Source of the DNA: Lytechinus pictus
Lineage: Eukaryota
Assembly (NCBI RefSeq): GCF_037042905.1
Contig: NC_087263.1
Span: 8,680,001 to 8,744,000 of the forward strand
Direction: 5' to 3'
DNA: 64,000 bases
Shown here: piece after piece, positions 5,464 through 46,985 of the stretch
Numbering within the stretch: the stretch's first letter is position 1
Layout of the letters: the number at the start of each line of letters is the position of its first letter
Notes under the pieces: generated by a model
The model's database searches: none
Seen by the model: the letters and a program-made list of their open reading frames with translations, nothing else
Told to the model about the DNA's origin: nothing
Translations under genes and position numbers: made by a program

Positions 5464-5904
5464 AGAATGAAAAAACATTCATTATTTGGTTTATATGACA
5501 CCTAGGAATTGATTTTTTTTTCATATGAAATTCATGAATTTCGATGCAAACACGCTCATGCAGTGCGAGTTCGGTCTGTTGATTATTACGTCATTACAAC
5601 ATGCGCACTGCTGGTGCCTGCAGCTGCAGCTGCAGGTGCGCGAGTGCAATGGAGTGCAATGGACAAAATCATATGGATCCTAAATTGCACGGTCGATGAC
5701 GTCATTGCAAAATGGGCTGAATGAACGATATCAAACAACCAATCAAATCACAAGGATGTATCTAGGTGTCATATAAATGTATATATATATATATATATAT
5801 ATATATTGTAAAGAAATGGATGAAGAGAACAAAGGTAGGCGTAGCTTAAATCAAGGTTCCCCAGAGCTATCTACCCTTTGGAAAATTTGGTGATGCCGAA
5901 AAAA

Positions 5905-5976
5905 TGCCTCTGCCGGGAATCGAACCCGGGCCCCCAGCTTTGAACGCCGGTGCCTTAACCACTAGACCACAGAGAC
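5905..5976 (-). tRNA. tRNA-like gene, anticodon UCA (copy 1)
   Basis: Reverse complement of 7418-7489; full cloverleaf followed by T6. Confidence 0.8.
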
Positions 5977-6312
5977 GGGTTAGTGGCTAGGGCGACCCCG
6001 ATCCGATTGACCGTCAGATAGACAGATTTTCGACACCATACCAATTATAATTTCCTTTGTCGGGTGAAGGTGGGTTTTGAACAATGACAAGCCGCCATGC
6101 CTCAGCTGGATCAAATCTATTGCTTCGATACAGTACACGTATGGGAGAAGACATACAAATGTGTAAAGTGATACATGTACAACAGCTTTTGGCAACTCTT
6201 TTTTATTTAAATATTGTAAAGAAATGGATGAAGAGAACAAAGGTAGGCGTAGCTTAAATCAAGGTTCCCCAGAGCTATTTACCCTTTGGAAAAATTGGTG
6301 ATGCCGAAAAAA

Positions 6313-6384
6313 TGCCTCTGCCGGGAATCGAACCCGGGCCCCCAGCTTTGAACGCCGGTGCCTTAACCACTAGACCACAGAGAC
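6313..6384 (-). tRNA. tRNA-like gene, anticodon UCA (copy 2)
   Basis: Reverse complement of 7010-7081; full cloverleaf followed by T6. Confidence 0.8.
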
Positions 6385-7009
6385 GGGTTAGTGGCTAGGG
6401 CGACCCCGATCCGATTGACCGTCAGATAGACAGATTTTCGACACCATACCAATTATAATTTCCTTTGTCGGGTGAAGGTGGGTTTTGAACAATGACAAGC
6501 CGCCATGCCTCAGCTGGATCAAAGCTATTGCTTCGATACAGTACACGTATGGGAGAAGACATACAAATGTGTAAAGTGATACATGTACAACAGCTTTTGG
6601 CAACTCTTTTTTATTTAAATATTGTAAAGAAATGGATGAAGAGAACAAAGGTAGGCGTAGCTTAAATCAAGGTTCCCCAGAGCATCACCAATTTTTCCAA
6701 AGGGTAGATAGCTCTGGGGAACCTTGATTTAAGCTACGCCTACCTTTGTTCTCTTCATCCATTTCTTTACAATATTTAAATAAAAAAGAGTTGCCAAAAG
6801 CTGTTGTACATGTATCACTTTACACATTTGTATGTCTTCTCCCATACGTGTACTGTATCGAAGCAATAGCTTTGATCCAGCTGAGGCATGGCGGCTTGTC
6901 ATTGTTCAAAACCCACCTTCACCCGACAAAGGAAATTATAATTGGTATGGTGTCGAAAATTTGTCTATCTGACGGTCAATCGGATCGGGGTCGCCCTAGC
7001 CACTAACCC

Positions 7010-7081
7010 GTCTCTGTGGTCTAGTGGTTAAGGCACCGGCGTTCAAAGCTGGGGGCCCGGGTTCGATTCCCGGCAGAGGCA
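7010..7081 (+). tRNA. tRNA-like gene, anticodon UCA (copy 3)
   Basis: GTCTCTG TG GTCT-AGTGGTTA-AGGC A CCGGC-GT TCA AA-GCTGG GGGC CCGGG-TTCGATT-CCCGG CAGAGGC A. All four stems pair, A and B boxes are canonical, anticodon at 7043-7045, T6 at 7082-7087. Confidence 0.8.
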
Positions 7082-7087
7082 TTTTTT
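7082..7087 (+). terminator. Pol III terminator (T6) after the tRNA-like gene; present in all four copies
   Basis: TTTTTT directly after the discriminator base. Confidence 0.7.
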
Positions 7088-7417
7088 CGGCATCACCAAT
7101 TTTTCCAAAGGGTAAATAGCTCTGGGGAACCTTGATTTAAGCTACGCCTACCTTTGTTCTCTTCATCCATTTCTTTACAATATTTAAATAAAAAAGAGTT
7201 GCCAAAAGCTGTTGTACATGTATCACTTTACACATTTGTATGTCTTCTCCCATACGTGTACTGTATCGAAGCAATAGCTTTGATCCAGCTGAGGCATGGC
7301 GGCTTGTCATTGTTCAAAACCCACCTTCACCCGACAAAGGAAATTATAATTGGTATGGTGTCGAAAATCTGTCTATCTGACGGTCAATCGGATCGGGGTC
7401 GCCCTAGCCACTAACCC

Positions 7418-7489
7418 GTCTCTGTGGTCTAGTGGTTAAGGCACCGGCGTTCAAAGCTGGGGGCCCGGGTTCGATTCCCGGCAGAGGCA
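7418..7489 (+). tRNA. tRNA-like gene, anticodon UCA (copy 4)
   Basis: Identical to 7010-7081, 408 bp downstream, followed by T6. Confidence 0.8.
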
Positions 7490-8172
7490 TTTTTTCGGCA
7501 TTACCAATTTTTCCAAAGGGTAGATAGCTCTGGGGAACCTTGATTTAAGCTACGCCTACCTTTGTTCTCTTCATCCATTTCTTTACAATATTTAAATAAA
7601 AAAGAGTTGCCAAAAGCTGTTGTACATGTATCACTTTACACATTTATATATATATATATATATATAGGTAGGTAGTATAAATTTATTTATAAATGTATAA
7701 ATATATAAAAAAAAATATAATAATTATTATAACTATTATAATTATCATTTATATTTATAATTATCACCCGTATCAGACATCTGAGCTGGTCATTTACAAA
7801 ACCGTATTTTCCTGTATTTTATTATTATCAGGAAGGGATAGGTATATTGTTTGTATTTTCCTCGGTCTCAATGCGCGTATTGACTTTGCATGCCGAGACG
7901 ACGCAAAATATACCTTTTTTTATTTTCCCTGGTCTCACATCCGGGCCTTTGAGGATGCGAATGAAGTGATACGCTTCATAATGTTCCGCGCACCAACGAT
8001 CTACGTCATAATAAAGACAACGCTGGATCTGGGCGCTTGCAAGTACGTCATAATGGTAAAGTGCAGAGCCTATAGACACTGATATTATCATGACGCAACA
8101 GAACTCTATTCTTAAAAGATATCACTGTTATAATGATTTTTGCTCTAGATATCTGATTTGGATGATAATAAA

Positions 8173-8312: not shown

Positions 8313-8885
8313 ATATAAACATATCCAATAAATGTATACAAATATATGTATAAATATTTTCCCCATCATTTATGATGCAAGGATGCATGAGGACATGATG
8401 TCAGTTGACGAATGTAATCAAAAGAATGATTGTAAAACCATTCGTAAAAGGATAAAGGTGAACTCGTTCGAAATTGAAATTAAAATAATAAAGCCACCCC
8501 ATGCTGCTTTCCTTATCGATGACCAAGGTTGTTTATAACTCTTTTAAGTCAACGTAACTCTATAGCACTAGAAATCAATGGAGATAGTATCAACAACGAA
8601 TTTGATCTCTTCATCCAATGGATTAAGCACTTAATCGCCAGATCATCCCCTCCAGAAGTAGTGAAAGTGGCACTTTAACTTGAGTTTGATTGTGTTATCT
8701 GGCCCAGATAATCCTGTATCGGTAGTCTGCATCGTACTAATGGGAATTGAAGCGTCATATATTTTCACACCCCCACATTGTCTTCAGGGAAAATAAATAC
8801 AAGGGCATTGTCCTTTCTCAGACTTGTTTATTTTCCCTGGCCGTCATTTAAAGTGTGTCTGCGTTTTGATTGTTATTCTCTTTAA

Positions 8886-9489
8886 AGGACAAGTCCACCC
8901 CAACAAAAAATTGATTTGAAAAAAAGGAGAAAAATCCAACAAGCAAAAAACTGAAAATTTCATCAAAATCGGATGTAAAATAAGAAAGTTATGACATTTT
9001 TAAGTTTCGCTTAATTTCACAAAACAGTTATATGCAAATCCTGGTCGGTGTGCAAATTGGCAGACTGATGACGTCACCCACTCACTATATCTTTTGTATT
9101 TTATTACATGAAATATGAAATATTCTAATTTTCTCCTAATTGTCAAGTGAAACAAAGTTTTATTTCTCACTGAACATGTGCAATTACCATTATTTTAACA
9201 GTATATTGTTAAGTTAAGTTGGTCCTTATTGTCAAATCTGTAAAAATTGAAATATTTTATTATTCAAACAATAAAAAACAAAAGAAATAGTGAGTGATGG
9301 ACATCATCGACTCTTTCATTTGCATATCGCTGAGTTGCACATTGAACTATTTTGTGAAAAATAAGCGAAACTTAAAAATGTCATAACTTTCTTATTTTAC
9401 CTCCGATTTCGATGAAACTTGTAGCGTTATGTTTGTTTGATTTTTCTCTATCGATTCAAATCAACAATTTTCTGGGGTGGACTTGACCT
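8886..9489. mobile_element. Non-autonomous TIR element, Kolobok-like (TTAA TSD, AG termini)
   Basis: TTAA|aggacaagtccacccc ... ggggtggacttgacct|TTAA, with long imperfect inner inverted repeats (~8954-9012 vs ~9363-9420). Confidence 0.8.
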
Positions 9490-9649
9490 TTAAACCCTCC
9501 AGTCTTTCCTTTTCATTTTTGGTGATGGGTGAAAACTCTGGCTCTGTTTCTGTGTCTTTATTTATCCAGTGGATCGACTGCCTTGTCACGTCTGTCTTTG
9601 CGTCTATAAGTCTCTCATTTTCTCTCTGTTTTTCAAATATATATATATG

Positions 9650-9683
<34 letters not shown>

Positions 9684-9735
9684 TATAGGCGAAAAAATGA
9701 CAAGACGATTTGACGTTGCTGTAGACCACAATTTA

Positions 9736-40198: not shown

Positions 40199-41885
40199 CG
40201 GAGAATCCTAGTCCGTTTAAAACCCCCTCTGGTAAAGCGAGTTCATTTTGCAATTGCCGAAAATGAAAACACTTAATACGAGTTATGCATTAACGTCGTT
40301 TACCGTTGCCACGACAATTCCATCGCATAATCGCCTCCTTGTGCAAAATTTGAGCCTTTTTCTTATTTCGGTTTTCTCATCGTTAGTGTGTTCATTGAGA
40401 AATCGCAGATAAAAGTGAGACTTAAAAAAAGCAGATGAAAAGCAACTATTTTTCTTGCAAAAAAAAATCTGTAAATAATACATTGATTCTGCAACAGTTA
40501 GGAATCCAGTGACAGAATTGACAACAACTACTATATGTAATCGTTCCTACATATTTTTTTATAAAATGTTATTGTTTAAGTTGTTTCACTTGAAACATTC
40601 TTCCCCCATTAATGTTTGTGTGATCAAGGGATACAATTTTCTGACCAGATGGTTATCATCTCATTTCTAAAGACACATACGGAAATATGATCGCTGATGC
40701 AGGAATGGACATTTGGATGCGCATAACAGTTATCCACCTCCGAGTGTCTGCACGTATTGACAAATTACTTCAATTATTGTAATCTCTTTTAGATTATTTC
40801 AGATAAAATCTTGAGAGACAGTTCGTTTAAAGATACGGAATCCGGAAAAAAAAAACGCGTTATAACCGATCCAGCTGGCATTCAATTATCAGAGCAACGC
40901 TGAAAGCAAAACCCTTGTTTTCAAATTACCGGAATTTCCACTTCTGTCATTGGTTGGTATTATTCGCAAGGCTGAATTGAATTACGGCGCTCAATCTTCT
41001 CGACATTACCCATTCCTTATGTGCTCTATTTCACATTGTTCAAAGAAAATCCCTTTTCCCTCTGGCCTCTTTTACCGTGTCTACAAGTGGTATGGAAAAG
41101 CAAAAAGGTTTTCTTTTGAAAAAGGTACTTGGCTCTGTAGATCTCTGTGGATCTTTTTTAAACAAACAAAGCCCATGGTAGCATAACAATTCCTTATCTA
41201 TTACAAAAACCTAATTCTTGTTATACCTTGAGAATGGCAAATATAAAACCTTATACGACGCAAACGCAGCAAGTGGAAGCGATTTAGGGTTTCAGAATGC
41301 TAAAAAACAGAAAGAAAGAAAGAGAGAGAGGAAAGAGCTGGGGAGGGGGAGACGGAAACGGAGATAGAGAGGAGGGAGGGATGGATGTTTGGATATATCA
41401 ATTTTGAATGGGATTCAGCTAAAACTTGGTGATATGATAATGATACACAGTTAACTTTCCAGACGAGGGTAATTGCAAAAGCTTGTCCATTTCACATGAA
41501 AAGAGTGTACACTGTTAAAAATTTATCCTTAAAATAAAAGAAGTTTCTGAAGCAGAGTCTCGAGAACACCTGTAATCTTACCAGATTGCGTAAAACAATA
41601 AATTATTTCAATTTGGACAAAAAGACCAAAAATGGACTGCTCAAAATCACACAAAAGGTGCATTTTTGCTGTAATATTGTTCCTTTTGTAAGGACATCTG
41701 GTCAAAATTTTGTAGAAAAAGGTAGATAAATTAGTGCTATTAGCTCATTGAAATCACCAATTCAACCATTCTCTCTCCATCACATGTTTTAATTCACATA
41801 TTACAATTCAAAACAGCAATACAATATTTGTTTGATTTAATTTGTCATTCGATAGAATAACTATAAATGTGTGTATGTACAACAA

Positions 41886-44800
41886 AGTATGAGGTAATAC
41901 AAATCAAAATGGATAAGCTTATACCTGTATGATACTCTGCAATGTATGAAGCAATACAAATCAAAAGGGATAAGCTTATACCTACGTGACATTCTGCAAT
42001 GTATGAGGTAATACAAATCAAAATGGATAAGCTTATACCTGTATGATACTCTGCAATGTATGAGGCAATAGGAATCAAATGGGATAAGCTTATACCTGTA
42101 GGATACTCTGCAATGTATGAAGCAATACAAATCATATGGGATAAGCTTATCCCTGTGTGATACTCTACAATGTATGAGGTAATACAAATCAAAATGGATA
42201 AGCTTATACCTGTATGATACTCTGCAATGTATGAGGTAATACAAATCAAAAGGGATAAGCTTATACCAGTATGATACTCTGCAATGTATGATGCAATAGA
42301 AATCAAACATGATAAGCTTATACCTGTATGATACTCTGCAATGTATGAGGCAATACAAATCAAACGGGATAAGCTTATACCTGTAGGATACTCTGCAATG
42401 TATGAGGTAATACAAATCAAAAGGGATAAGCTTATCCCTGTATGATACTCTGCAATGTATGAGGTAATACAAATCAAAAGGGATAAGCTTATACTTGTAG
42501 GATACTCTGCAATGTATGAAGCAATATAAATCAAACGGGATAAGCTTATACTTGTAGGATACTCTGCAATGCATGAAGTAGTACAAATCAAATGGGATAA
42601 GCTTATACCTGTATGATACTCAGCAATGTATGAGGCAATAAAAATCAAAAGAGATAAGCTTACACCTGTAGGATACTCAGCAATGTATTAGGTAATACAA
42701 ATCAAAAGGGATAAGCTTATACCTGTAGGATACTTTGCAATGTATGAGGCAATACAAATCAAAAGGGATAAGCTTATACCTGTATGATACTCTGCAATGT
42801 ATGAGGCAATACATATCAAAAGGGATAAGCTTATACCAGTATGATACTCTGCAATGTATGATGCAATAGAAATCAAACATGATAAGCTTATACCTGTATG
42901 ATACTCTGCAATGTATGAGGCAATACAAATCAAACGGGATAAGCTTATACCTGTAGGATACTCTGCAATGTATGAGGTAATACAAATCAAAAGGGATAAG
43001 CTTATCCCTGTATGATACTCTGCAATGTATGAGGTAATACAAATCAAAAGGGATAAGCTTATACTTGTAGGATACTCTGCAATGTATGAAGCAATATAAA
43101 TCAAACGGGATAAGCTTATACTTGTAGGATACTCTGCAATGCATGAAGTAGTACAAATCAAATGGGATAAGCTTATACCTGTATGATACTCAGCAATGTA
43201 TGAGGCAATACAAATCAAAAGAGATAAGCTTACACCTGTAGGATACTCAGCAATGTATTAGGTAATACAAATCAAAAGGGATAAGCTTATACCTGTAGGA
43301 TACTTTGCAATGTATGAGGCAATACAAATCAAAAGGGATAAGCTTATACCTGTATGATACTCTGCAATGTATGAGGCAATACATATCAAAAGGGATAAGC
43401 TTATCCCTGTGCGATACTCTGCAATGTATGAGGCAATACAAATCAAACGGGATAAGCTTATCCCTGTTTGATACTCTACAATGTATGAGATAGTACAAAT
43501 CAAATGGGATAAGCTTATCCCTGTATGATACTCAGCAATGTATGAGGCAATAAAAATCAAACGGGATAAGCTTATACCTGTAGGATACTTTGCAATGTAT
43601 GAGGTAATACATATCAAAAGGGATAAGCTTATACCTGTATGATACTCTGCAATGTATGAGGTAATACAAATCAAAAGGGATAAGCTTATACCTGTAGGAT
43701 ATTCTGCAATGTATGAGGTAATACAAATCAAAGGGATAAGCTTATACTTGTAGGATACTCTGCAATGTATGAGGCAATACAAATCATAAGGGATAAGCTT
43801 ATACCTGTATGATACTCTGCAATGTATGAGGTAATACAAATCAAAAGGTATAAGCTTATACCTGTAGGATACTCTGCAATGTATGAGGCAATACAAATCA
43901 AAAGGGATAAGCTTATACCTGTATGATACTCTAAAATGTATGAGGTAATACAAATCAAAAGGGATAAGCTTATCCCTGTAGGATACTCTGCAATGTATGA
44001 GGTAATGCAAATCAAACGGGATAAGCTTATACCTGTAGGATACTCTGCAATGTATGAGGCAATATAAATCAAACGGGATAAGCTTATACTTGCAGGATAC
44101 TCTGCAATGCATGAAGTAGGACAAATCAAATGGGATAAGCTTATACCTGTATGATACTCAGCAATGTATGAGGCAATATAAATCAAACGGGATAAGCTTA
44201 TACCTGTATGATACTCTGCAATGTATGAGGTAATACATATCAAACGGGATAAGCTTATACCTGTATGATACTCTACAATGTATGAGGTAATACAAATCAA
44301 ACGGGATAAGCTTATACCTATATGATACTCAGCAATGTATGAGGTAATACAAATCAAACGGGATAAGCTTACACCTGTATGATACTCTGCAATGTATGAG
44401 GCAATACAAATCAAAAGGGATAAGCTTATACCTGTATGATACTCTGCAATGTATGAGGTAATACAAATCAAAAGGGATAAGCTTATACCTGTAGGATACT
44501 CTGCAATGTATGAGGCAATACAAATCAAAGGGATAAGCTTATACCTGTAGGATACTCTAAAATGTATGAGGTAATACAAATCAAAAGGGATAAGCTTATC
44601 CCTGTAGGATACTCTGCAATGCATGAAGTAGTACAAATCAAATGGGATAAGCTTATACCTGTATGATACTCAGCAATGTATGAGGCAATACAAATCAAAA
44701 GAGGTAAGCTTATACCTGTAGGATACTCAGCAATGTATGAGGTAATACAAATCAAAAGGGATAAGCTTATACCTGTAGGATACTTTGCAATGTATGAGGC

Positions 44801-46985
44801 AATACAAATCAAAAGGGATAAGCTTATACCTGTATGATACTCAGCAATGTATGAGGCAATAAAAATCAAACGGGATAAGCTTATACCTGTAGGATACTTT
44901 GCAATGTATGAGGTAATACATATCAAAAGGGATAAGCTTATACCTGTATGATACTCTGCAATGTATGAGGTAATACAAATCAAAAGGGATAAGCTTATAC
45001 CTGTAGGATATTCTGCAATGTATGAGGTAATACAAATCAAAGGGATAAGCTTATACTTGTAGGATACTCTGCAATGTATGAGGTAATACAAATCAAAAGG
45101 GATAAGCTTATACCTGTAGGATACTCTGCAATGTATGAGGCAATACAAATCAAAAGGGATAAGCTTATACCTGTATGATACTCTAAAATGTATGAGGTAA
45201 TACAAATCAAAAGGGATAAGCTTATCCCTGTAGGATACTCTGCAATGTATGAGGTAATGCAAATCAAACGGGATAAGCTTATACCTGTAGGATACTCTGC
45301 AAAGTATGAGGCAATATAAATCAAACGGGATAAGCTTATACTTGCAGGATACTCTGCAATGCATGAAGTAGTACAAATCAAATGGGATAAGCTTATACCT
45401 GTATGATACTCAGCAATGTATGAGGTAATACAAATCAAACGGGATAAGCTTATACCTGTATGATACTCTGCAATGTATGAGGTAATACATATCAAACGGG
45501 ATAAGCTTATACCTGTATGATACTCTACAATGTATGAGGTAATACAAATCAAACGGGATAAGCTTATACCTGTATGATACTCAGCAATGTATGAGGTAAT
45601 ACAAATCAAACGGGATAAGCTTATACCTGTAGGATACTCTGTAATGTATGAGGCAATATAAATCAAACGGGATTAGCTTATACTTGTAGGATACTCTGCA
45701 ATGCATGAAGTAGTACAAATCAAATGGGATAAGCTTATACCTGTATGATACTCAGCAATGTATGAGGTAATACAAATCAAAGGGATAAGCTTATACCTGT
45801 ATGATACTCTACAATGTATGAGGTAATACAAATCAAACGGGATAAGCTTATACCTGTATGATACTCAGCAATGTATGAGGTAATACAAATCAAACGGGAT
45901 AAGCTTATACCTGTAGGATACTCTGTAATGTATGAGGCAATATAAATCAAACGGGATAAGCTTATACTTGTAGGATACTCTGCAATGCATGAAGTAGTAC
46001 AAATCAAATGGGATAAGCTTATACCTGTATGATACTCAGCAATGTATGAGGTAATACAAATCAAAGGGATAAGCTTATACCTGTAGGATACTCTAAAATG
46101 TATGAGGTAATACAAATCAAAAGGGATAAGCTTATACCTGTAGGATACTCTGCAATGTATGAGGCAATACATATCAAAAGGGATAAGCTTATCACTGTGC
46201 GATACTCTGCAATGTATGAGGCAATACAAATCAAACGGGATAAGCTTATACCTGTATGATACTCTGCAATGTATGAGGCAATACATATCAAAAGGGATAA
46301 GCTTATCCCTGTGCGATACTCTGCAATGTATGAGGCAATACAAATCAAACGGGATAAGCTTATCCCTGTTTGATACTCTACGATGTATGAGGCAGTACAA
46401 ATCAAACAGGATAAGCTTATACCTGTAAAATACTCTGCAATGTATGAGGCAATACAAATCAAACAGGATAAGCTTATACCTGTAGGATACTCTGCAATGT
46501 ATGAGGTAATACATATCAAAAGGGATAAGCTTATCCCTGTAGGATACTCTACAATGTATGAGGTAATACAAATCAAACGGGATAAGCTTATACCTGTATG
46601 ATACTCTGCAATGTATGAGGTAATACAAATCAAAAGGGATAAGCTTATACCTGTAGGATACTTTGCAATGTATGAGGTAATACATATCAAAAGGGATAAG
46701 CTTATCCCTGTGCGATACTCTACTATGTATGAGGTAGTACAAATCAAATGGGATAAGCTTATCCCTGTTTGATACTCTGCAATGTATGAGGTAGTACAAA
46801 TCAAATGGGATAAGCTTATCCCTGTGCGATACTCTGCAATGTATGAGGCAGTACAAATCAAACAGGATAAGCTTATACCTGTAAAATACTCTGCAATGTA
46901 TGAGGCAATACAAATCAAAAAGGATAAGCTTATCCCTGTAGGATACTCTACAATATATTAGGCAATACAAATCAAAAGGGATATG
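41886..46985. repeat. 57-bp minisatellite, roughly 89 units
   Basis: Consensus gggataagcttatacctgtatgatactctgcaatgtatgaggtaatacaaatcaaaa; some 56-bp units; the last unit resumes at ~47704-47748 after the MITE. Confidence 0.97.

Follow-up and report, generated by a model that had tools for sequence, protein, structure and literature searches.

ARAGORN found exactly four tRNA genes in the 64-kb window, that is, in the whole stretch of DNA analysed here, and all four carry the anticodon UCA (tca in the output). Copies 1 (5905-5976) and 2 (6313-6384) lie on the minus strand, while copies 3 (7010-7081, the gene to which the sequence-only reading had been attached) and 4 (7418-7489) lie on the plus strand. 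Each of them reaches 57.0 bits on the Rfam tRNA model (gathering score 29, E 1.2e-9) with zero non-standard pairs, compared to 62.2 bits for a host tRNA-Glu. Directly 3' of the discriminator base stands a run of six T residues, a terminator for RNA polymerase III (Pol III), which was read at 7082-7087 behind copy 3. The same run follows copy 4 at 7490-7495 and, on the minus strand, copy 1 at 5899-5904 and copy 2 at 6307-6312, and it is kept in the family consensus.

The window copies are 72 nt long, with stems of 7/4/5/5 bp and a variable loop of 4 nt. Their anticodon loop reads G32 U33 U34 C35 A36 A37 A38, and U8, A14, the GG of the D loop, U33, A37 and TTCGA in the T loop are canonical. The A box (TGGTCTAGTGG) and the B box (GGTTCGATTCC) are identical to those in host tRNA-Glu and tRNA-Gly; the discriminator is an A, and CCA is not encoded. 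At position 2-71 the window copies have U2-G71, whereas the family consensus has U2-A71. The genes thus combine the cloverleaf and conserved nucleotides of a class-I tRNA with the internal A and B boxes and the T-run terminator of an elongator tRNA gene (Pol III type 2). They also present UCA within a standard 7-nt loop, as expected of an opal suppressor, though with a G at position 32 that is atypical in tRNAs. The sequence-only reading had described four identical, fully paired UCA cloverleaves with these stems, loops, boxes and T6 run, and this description was confirmed by all four ARAGORN calls, by the Rfam score of each copy and by our own reading of the sequence.

The label 'SeC' that ARAGORN gave to the four genes is due to the anticodon alone. 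UCA, U33 and A37-A38 occur in the loops of both RNAs, but the UCA tRNA lacks the hallmarks of tRNA-Sec: the long variable arm, the 9/4 acceptor/T helix of 13 bp (here 7/5) and the 6-bp D stem (here 4 bp). The earlier verdict that these genes do not encode tRNA-Sec is therefore upheld. The UCA tRNA also differs from classical opal suppressors, which derive from tRNA-Trp: it is not tRNA-Trp-like, it has G32, and it exists in thousands of decaying copies.

A composite insertion in a (TA)n tract

The earlier account has to be corrected in that two of the four copies are on the minus strand and that all four lie within one inverted and tandem insertion. This composite insertion spans 5796-7649 in a (TA)n tract and is built from a 408-bp unit arranged in two head-to-head arms. 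In numbering the unit, position 1 is the 5' end of the tRNA. On the left, a remnant of the target microsatellite (5771-5806, an AT array in TRF) encloses the end of the first arm at 5796. The inverted arm (5796-6683, minus strand) comprises 2.2 units (TRF period 408, 98% matches); its 5' truncation falls at unit position 110, its 3' end at position 181. The direct arm (6682-7649, plus strand) comprises 2.4 units (TRF period 408, 99% matches) and runs from unit position 81 to a 3' end at position 232. Read at 7640-7666, the sequence passes from the end of this arm (7649) into (AT)n, the right remnant of the target microsatellite (7649-7666). The inverted repeat formed by the two arms measures 888 nt and is 99% complementary to 6711-7598.

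Comparison of the units within this insertion showed variation at just 8 of the 336 positions outside the tRNA, three of them at the (TA)n junctions. Given this rate, zero variable sites would be expected in 72 nt with a probability of about 0.2-0.35. The sequence-only reading had taken the identity of the four genes, amid scattered SNPs elsewhere in the unit, as weak evidence of constraint. Because the genes belong to a single insertion and so few variable sites are expected anyway, their identity is no evidence of constraint. The four copies would be identical because they were made in one recent event and not through selection.

Several further features were observed in the window. An AATAAA at 7187-7195 coincides with the 3' end of the element at unit position 181, and contigs of run X8, whose status as RNA is a guess, extend with 13 A residues past 7195, where either a poly(A) site or internal oligo-dT priming is possible. 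An inverted repeat at 8881-9494 and 9637-9687 (137-nt arms, 84% complementary, 340 nt apart) lies beside (TA)n and may be another microsatellite-associated insertion. At 41883-46983, a minisatellite of 5.1 kb repeats a 57-bp period in about 90 copies (90% matches). Its overlapping open reading frames of 150-480 aa and weak Pfam matches to 'lysozyme' and SH3 domains were dismissed as artefacts, the repeat period being a multiple of three.

Antisense leader and parentage of the tRNA module

Immediately upstream of each gene lies a 79-nt leader that is an imperfect antisense copy of it (6931-7009 and 7339-7417 on the plus strand, 5977-6055 and 6385-6463 on the minus strand). The leader is antisense to the D arm, the T arm and the 3' acceptor strand of the tRNA and to a 25-nt trailer. 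Its reverse complement aligns to tRNA plus trailer with a score of 45, against 17 ± 3.3 and a maximum of 35 in 500 shuffles, and the family consensus retains a score of 43. The region 6900-7130 folds into a long hairpin of -97.1 kcal/mol (z -7.18), and none of 200 shuffled sequences was as stable. In the consensus, the hairpin has -98.6 kcal/mol, compared to -75.7 kcal/mol with the cloverleaf enforced. The 336-nt spacer is self-paired as well (z -3.7). In a long template RNA, leader and tRNA would form an imperfect hairpin of about 90 bp. As this fold is predicted to be about 23 kcal/mol more stable than the one with the cloverleaf, neither RNase P nor RNase Z would have access to the tRNA. 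The junction between antisense copy and gene lies exactly at tRNA position 1, which suggests the trace that a PLE-style (Penelope-like element) head-to-head insertion of an ancestor starting with the tRNA would leave. The hairpin may be no more than what an ancestral inverted duplication left behind.

The tRNA of the family consensus has 21 of 21 standard pairs. It is identical to host tRNA-Glu-UUC (L092) at 48 of 72 positions and to host tRNA-Gly-UCC (L095) at 49 of 72, and it has the D loop and the entire T arm in common with both. Owing to this near-equal identity, the parentage is ambiguous: the resemblance of the D and T arms to tRNA-Glu, to which the sequence-only reading had pointed, is real, but it is not specific, as tRNA-Gly is equally close. 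The anticodon loop, G1-C72 and A73 of the consensus are closer to tRNA-Gly, from whose anticodon UCA is one change away. Seven or eight stem pairs, depending on the host tRNA compared, differ on both sides with pairing kept. A perfect consensus with so many both-sided differences from the host tRNAs could reflect a history of selection on a working tRNA. The host tRNA-Gly-UCC genes themselves are clustered on contig C13, where at least 35 near-identical copies, L095 among them, occupy both strands over about 80 kb (22.08-22.16 Mb).

The genome also holds a second, classical tRNA-headed SINE family, seen at about position 1500 in each of six loci (L064, L068, L072, L073, L082 and L084). The head of this family is degenerate, and its body, which includes TTCCTTCAGCAAGAAATTTACCCACATTGTG, is conserved. 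It has the D-arm word GGTCTAGTGGTTAAG and a TTCAA loop motif in common with the UCA tRNA, and both may descend from one ancestor. UCA tRNAs with the usual C32 loop and a short variable arm were also searched for by pattern, which gave 23 matches in the genome. Four of these are the element's own anticodon-arm sequence with C32 and the rest resemble heads of the second SINE; an independent UCA tRNA with a C32 loop was therefore rejected, as all 23 matches look like copies of the element or heads of that SINE. In one contig of run X11 (organism B), joined at the position of window 7042, the UCA loop and 3' half follow a tRNA-Gly-like 5' half, a form that would have the canonical C32 loop together with UCA. 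This Gly-like chimeric form is absent from the present genome at up to 2 mismatches; the contig may be a chimera, or the sister species may have a second family of UCA tRNA-like genes.

A dispersed family and its class

The exact 26-nt anticodon arm matches 1,878 times in the 811-Mb assembly, and in 1,840 of these matches the anticodon is TCA. A 15-nt word from the D arm gives 3,658 matches, a total that includes the second SINE family, compared to a single match for the reversed control, and a query with the flank alone yields 1,105 candidates. We conclude that retroposition has spread roughly two thousand or more copies of the UCA tRNA module. Fragments are dispersed on every large contig, many of them shorter than one unit, and the number of units per array varies from below one to at least 38. 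The largest is a satellite-like array on contig C2 (about 8,866,150-8,881,200), where at least 38 units follow each other at a spacing of 406 bp, all with intact UCA arms. Contigs from three other organisms carry the unit with UCA as well, and UCA is the majority anticodon in several related species. Within the tRNA, the contigs from other organisms differ consistently from the window copy only by A71 in place of G71, which is the state of the family consensus.

The ends of the copies follow a pattern. Unit position 181 accounts for 34 of the 91 sampled 3' ends, position 232 for 24 and position 225 for 15. A TA repeat of at least 8 nt directly follows 64 of the 91, and several of the ends at 225 abut (CA)n. 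The composite insertions that were inspected pair an arm ending at 181 with one ending at 225 or 232. The 5' ends, on the other hand, are scattered, and every 'solo' tRNA copy sits in a 5'-truncated piece of the unit. There is no peak of 5' ends at the 3' end of the tRNA, and definition of these ends by RNase Z was rejected on account of their scatter.

Taken together, 5' ends that vary, 3' ends that are fixed and have microhomology to a microsatellite, tandem units with an inverted and 5'-truncated copy beside them, and an extra tail of 44-51 bp at just one end match the anatomy of endonuclease-positive PLEs. The four genes are thus probably modules of one insertion of a short, non-autonomous PLE-type retroelement with a 408-bp unit that spreads by retroposition. 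Target-primed reverse transcription would insert such an element in (TA)n or (CA)n microsatellites, and a PLE enzyme would mobilise it in trans. The proposal of the sequence-only reading that this is a mobile element of Penelope-like architecture targeting (TA)n is in this respect borne out by the insertion anatomy. The assignment to PLEs is one of architecture, since microsatellite-specific LINEs also exist.

For Naiads and other PLEs, 5' truncation, partial tandems, an adjacent inverted copy, a tail of 30-40 bp at one end and a preference for (TA)n have been described, and Naiads have no hammerhead ribozyme (Craig et al. 2021, PMC8557442). The UCA element shares all of these traits; it differs from Naiads and other endonuclease-positive PLEs in having no open reading frame and in its longer tail. 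A coding PLE of the same genome, L096, forms a palindromic insertion between two (TA)n runs, with a layout like that of the UCA unit. This PLE (L096:1980-5848) has a C-terminal GIY-YIG endonuclease and 266-aa open frames, and each of its arms ends in about two tandem 566-bp units. L096, the one PLE locus that was compared, has no sequence similarity to the UCA unit, and an autonomous PLE sharing sequence with the unit was not found in this comparison; the genome contains 468 GIY-YIG candidates.

Non-LTR retrozymes offer a second comparison. They are non-autonomous tandem derivatives of PLEs with units of 150-450 bp and highly self-paired RNAs (Cervera & de la Pena 2020, PMC7229834; see also Li, Clavereau & Pollet 2026, bioRxiv 10.64898/2026.07.22.740005). 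The UCA element resembles them in its short unit, its range from tandem dimers to long multimers, its non-coding nature, its high copy number, its PLE association and its self-paired RNA. However, neither a hammerhead family nor another ribozyme matched at E values up to 5 over 5500-7900, and instead of a hammerhead the unit carries a complete Pol III tRNA gene with an antisense leader. In addition, no link from the unit to a PLE pseudo-LTR was found in the comparison with L096. A hammerhead was not detected in L096 either. MicroRNA-like matches at 6620-6775 and in the centre of L096 lie below the gathering scores and were set aside as artefacts of palindrome centres.

The unit also resembles tRNA-derived SINEs, as it contains a tRNA-related module with A and B boxes and has been retroposed into thousands of 5'-truncated copies. 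One might therefore regard it as an ordinary tRNA-derived SINE mobilised by a microsatellite-specific LINE rather than by a PLE. The fixed 3' end with microhomology to the target repeat would fit this reading, as would the presence of the second tRNA-headed SINE family with the same D-arm sequence and the head-to-head junction exactly at tRNA position 1, which suggests an ancestral RNA beginning at the tRNA. In contrast to a SINE, however, the UCA unit has a perfect cloverleaf with an immediate terminator: between them, the T6 run and a T5 run about 15 nt beyond it would keep Pol III from reaching the body of the element. The tRNA is, moreover, internal to the inserted RNA, and tandem units, inverted arm and one-sided tail are PLE hallmarks that recur in the layout of L096, so that we consider a LINE-mobilised SINE highly improbable. 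An origin as a host tandem tRNA gene cluster, homogenised by concerted evolution and not a transposon at all, would account for the 408-bp tandem arrays, up to the long one on contig C2, and would parallel the clustering of true host tRNA-Gly-UCC genes. It is already contradicted by the insertion anatomy, with dispersed, 5'-truncated fragments that always end at 181, 225 or 232 in microsatellites and with inverted arms, and its copies would not be expected to decay neutrally as these do; we give this origin almost no credence. The PLE-type element proposed above is best filed as a hammerhead-less, tRNA-bearing relative of the PLE-associated short tandem retroelements.

Decay of the copies and possible roles of the UCA tRNA

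Across 84 copies, divergence from the consensus amounts to 3.0% in the tRNA, 2.8% in the upstream and 2.5% in the downstream flank. Copies recovered by way of their flanks, a set unbiased for the tRNA, give 4.1% for the tRNA versus 2.6% and 1.2% for the flanks, and leaving out CpG sites does not change this picture. Variants common to at least three separate insertions, which are source-copy changes, affect 3 of 72 tRNA sites and 14 of 219 flank sites and are thus no rarer in the tRNA than in the flanks. A variant with a deletion in the T loop and B box was found in four separate insertions. Neither divergence nor the counts of common variants therefore show purifying selection on the tRNA relative to its flanks, and constraint on the tRNA, as put forward in the sequence-only reading, does not hold family-wide. 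UCA is kept in 73 of 74 sampled copies and in 98% of those with an otherwise exact anticodon arm (the 1,840 of 1,878 given above), which is what neutral divergence of about 3% predicts. Covariation in 71 copies, assessed for both the cloverleaf and the leader hairpin, gave a term of 0.06 with both-sided change in 1 of 52 pairs, in a family too young for this test to have power. The inserted copies decay neutrally. Such decay leaves room for a few functional loci.

The template RNA of the element would be a long, tRNA-sense transcript that runs through T6 and T5 and is not made by Pol III, because these runs would stop Pol III and because the inserted copies hold internal tRNAs. As these internal tRNAs are uncut and the 5' ends are scattered, the template RNA appears not to be processed at the tRNA. 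From individual DNA copies, by contrast, Pol III could make a tRNA-like RNA of 72 nt that has no leader, and Pol III-competent genes in such numbers could yield abundant RNA.

Two roles may be considered for this module. It could be essential to the element itself, taking the place that the hammerhead has in retrozymes and in the pseudo-LTRs of PLEs, either by marking where RNase P and RNase Z cut multimeric transcripts or, as a site for Pol III and TFIIIC, by keeping the arrays open. The match of unit size and tandem layout with the non-LTR retrozymes in spite of the missing hammerhead is in line with such a role, as are the perfect tRNA and terminator in the consensus and the strong self-pairing of the 336-nt spacer, which is reminiscent of retrozyme RNAs (PMC7229834). 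On the other hand, the internal tRNAs of inserted copies are uncut, the 5' ends of these copies do not peak at the 3' end of the tRNA, the T-loop/B-box deletion occurs in four separate insertions, and the leader hairpin would oppose cleavage by both RNase P and RNase Z. Taken together, an essential role is unlikely. Alternatively, some copies could be transcribed by Pol III, matured and charged, and could decode UGA in messages of the host or of transposons. Much of the gene itself is compatible with a working opal suppressor of this kind: the perfect cloverleaf with its canonical nucleotides, the A and B boxes of host tRNA-Glu and tRNA-Gly and the adjacent T6, a score of 57 bits that is close to the 62.2 bits of a host tRNA, the seven or eight pairs changed on both sides with all 21 pairs kept, and the prevalence of UCA in several related species. 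Eukaryotic TrpRS is reported to read G1-C72, A73, C35 and A36, and all of these features are present in the UCA tRNA. However, neither tRNA nor anticodon is conserved in excess of the flanks, and about 2,000 active copies would impose a heavy burden of read-through. GluRS and GlyRS, the synthetases of the candidate parents, both read the anticodon, and G32 is unusual; for these reasons, the UCA RNA is most likely inert or very weak as a translational adaptor. A working suppressor is thus, judged from the sequence, quite unlikely. Its more elaborate form, a transposon-borne opal suppressor of which a fraction of copies is expressed and charged, with a dosage set by the copies that escape silencing and with the leader as a switch, appears very unlikely; such a leader would hide the tRNA in the template RNA and not in the Pol III transcripts.

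The sequence-only reading had gone further and proposed that the element supplies a UGA decoder for PLE open reading frames with in-frame UGA codons. We surveyed the endonuclease domain of the PLEs and read one TGA case in its alignment. Of 59 scored GIY-YIG endonuclease matches, 49 have no in-frame stop, seven have one TGA and three have one TAA. In the best TGA-bearing match, the TGA aligns with an Arg of the intact copy and not with a Cys or Sec position; it looks like a CGA-to-TGA change and not like a recoded position. In the known UGA-containing Naiads, UGA replaces Cys, which is explained by SECIS elements (PMC8557442). The proposed link to in-frame UGA in PLE frames thus finds no support, and a decoder dedicated to PLEs is very doubtful indeed.

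The UCA genes are repeat modules and not conserved host suppressor genes. For annotation, this means that about two thousand or more calls of 'tRNA-SeC' or 'suppressor' in this genome and in its sister species represent one repeat family, which should be masked rather than counted. If even a few copies were charged, they would constitute a stop-codon suppressor encoded by a transposon in an animal. What sets this short tandem retroelement apart is that a whole tRNA transcription unit, accompanied by its own antisense copy, forms part of it. Short tandem elements associated with PLEs have so far been defined by their hammerheads, and the UCA element is a hammerhead-less counterpart. It provides a natural system in which to ask what role a structured RNA module plays in PLE-type retroposition, and by what means a tRNA embedded in a long RNA is shielded from RNase P and RNase Z.
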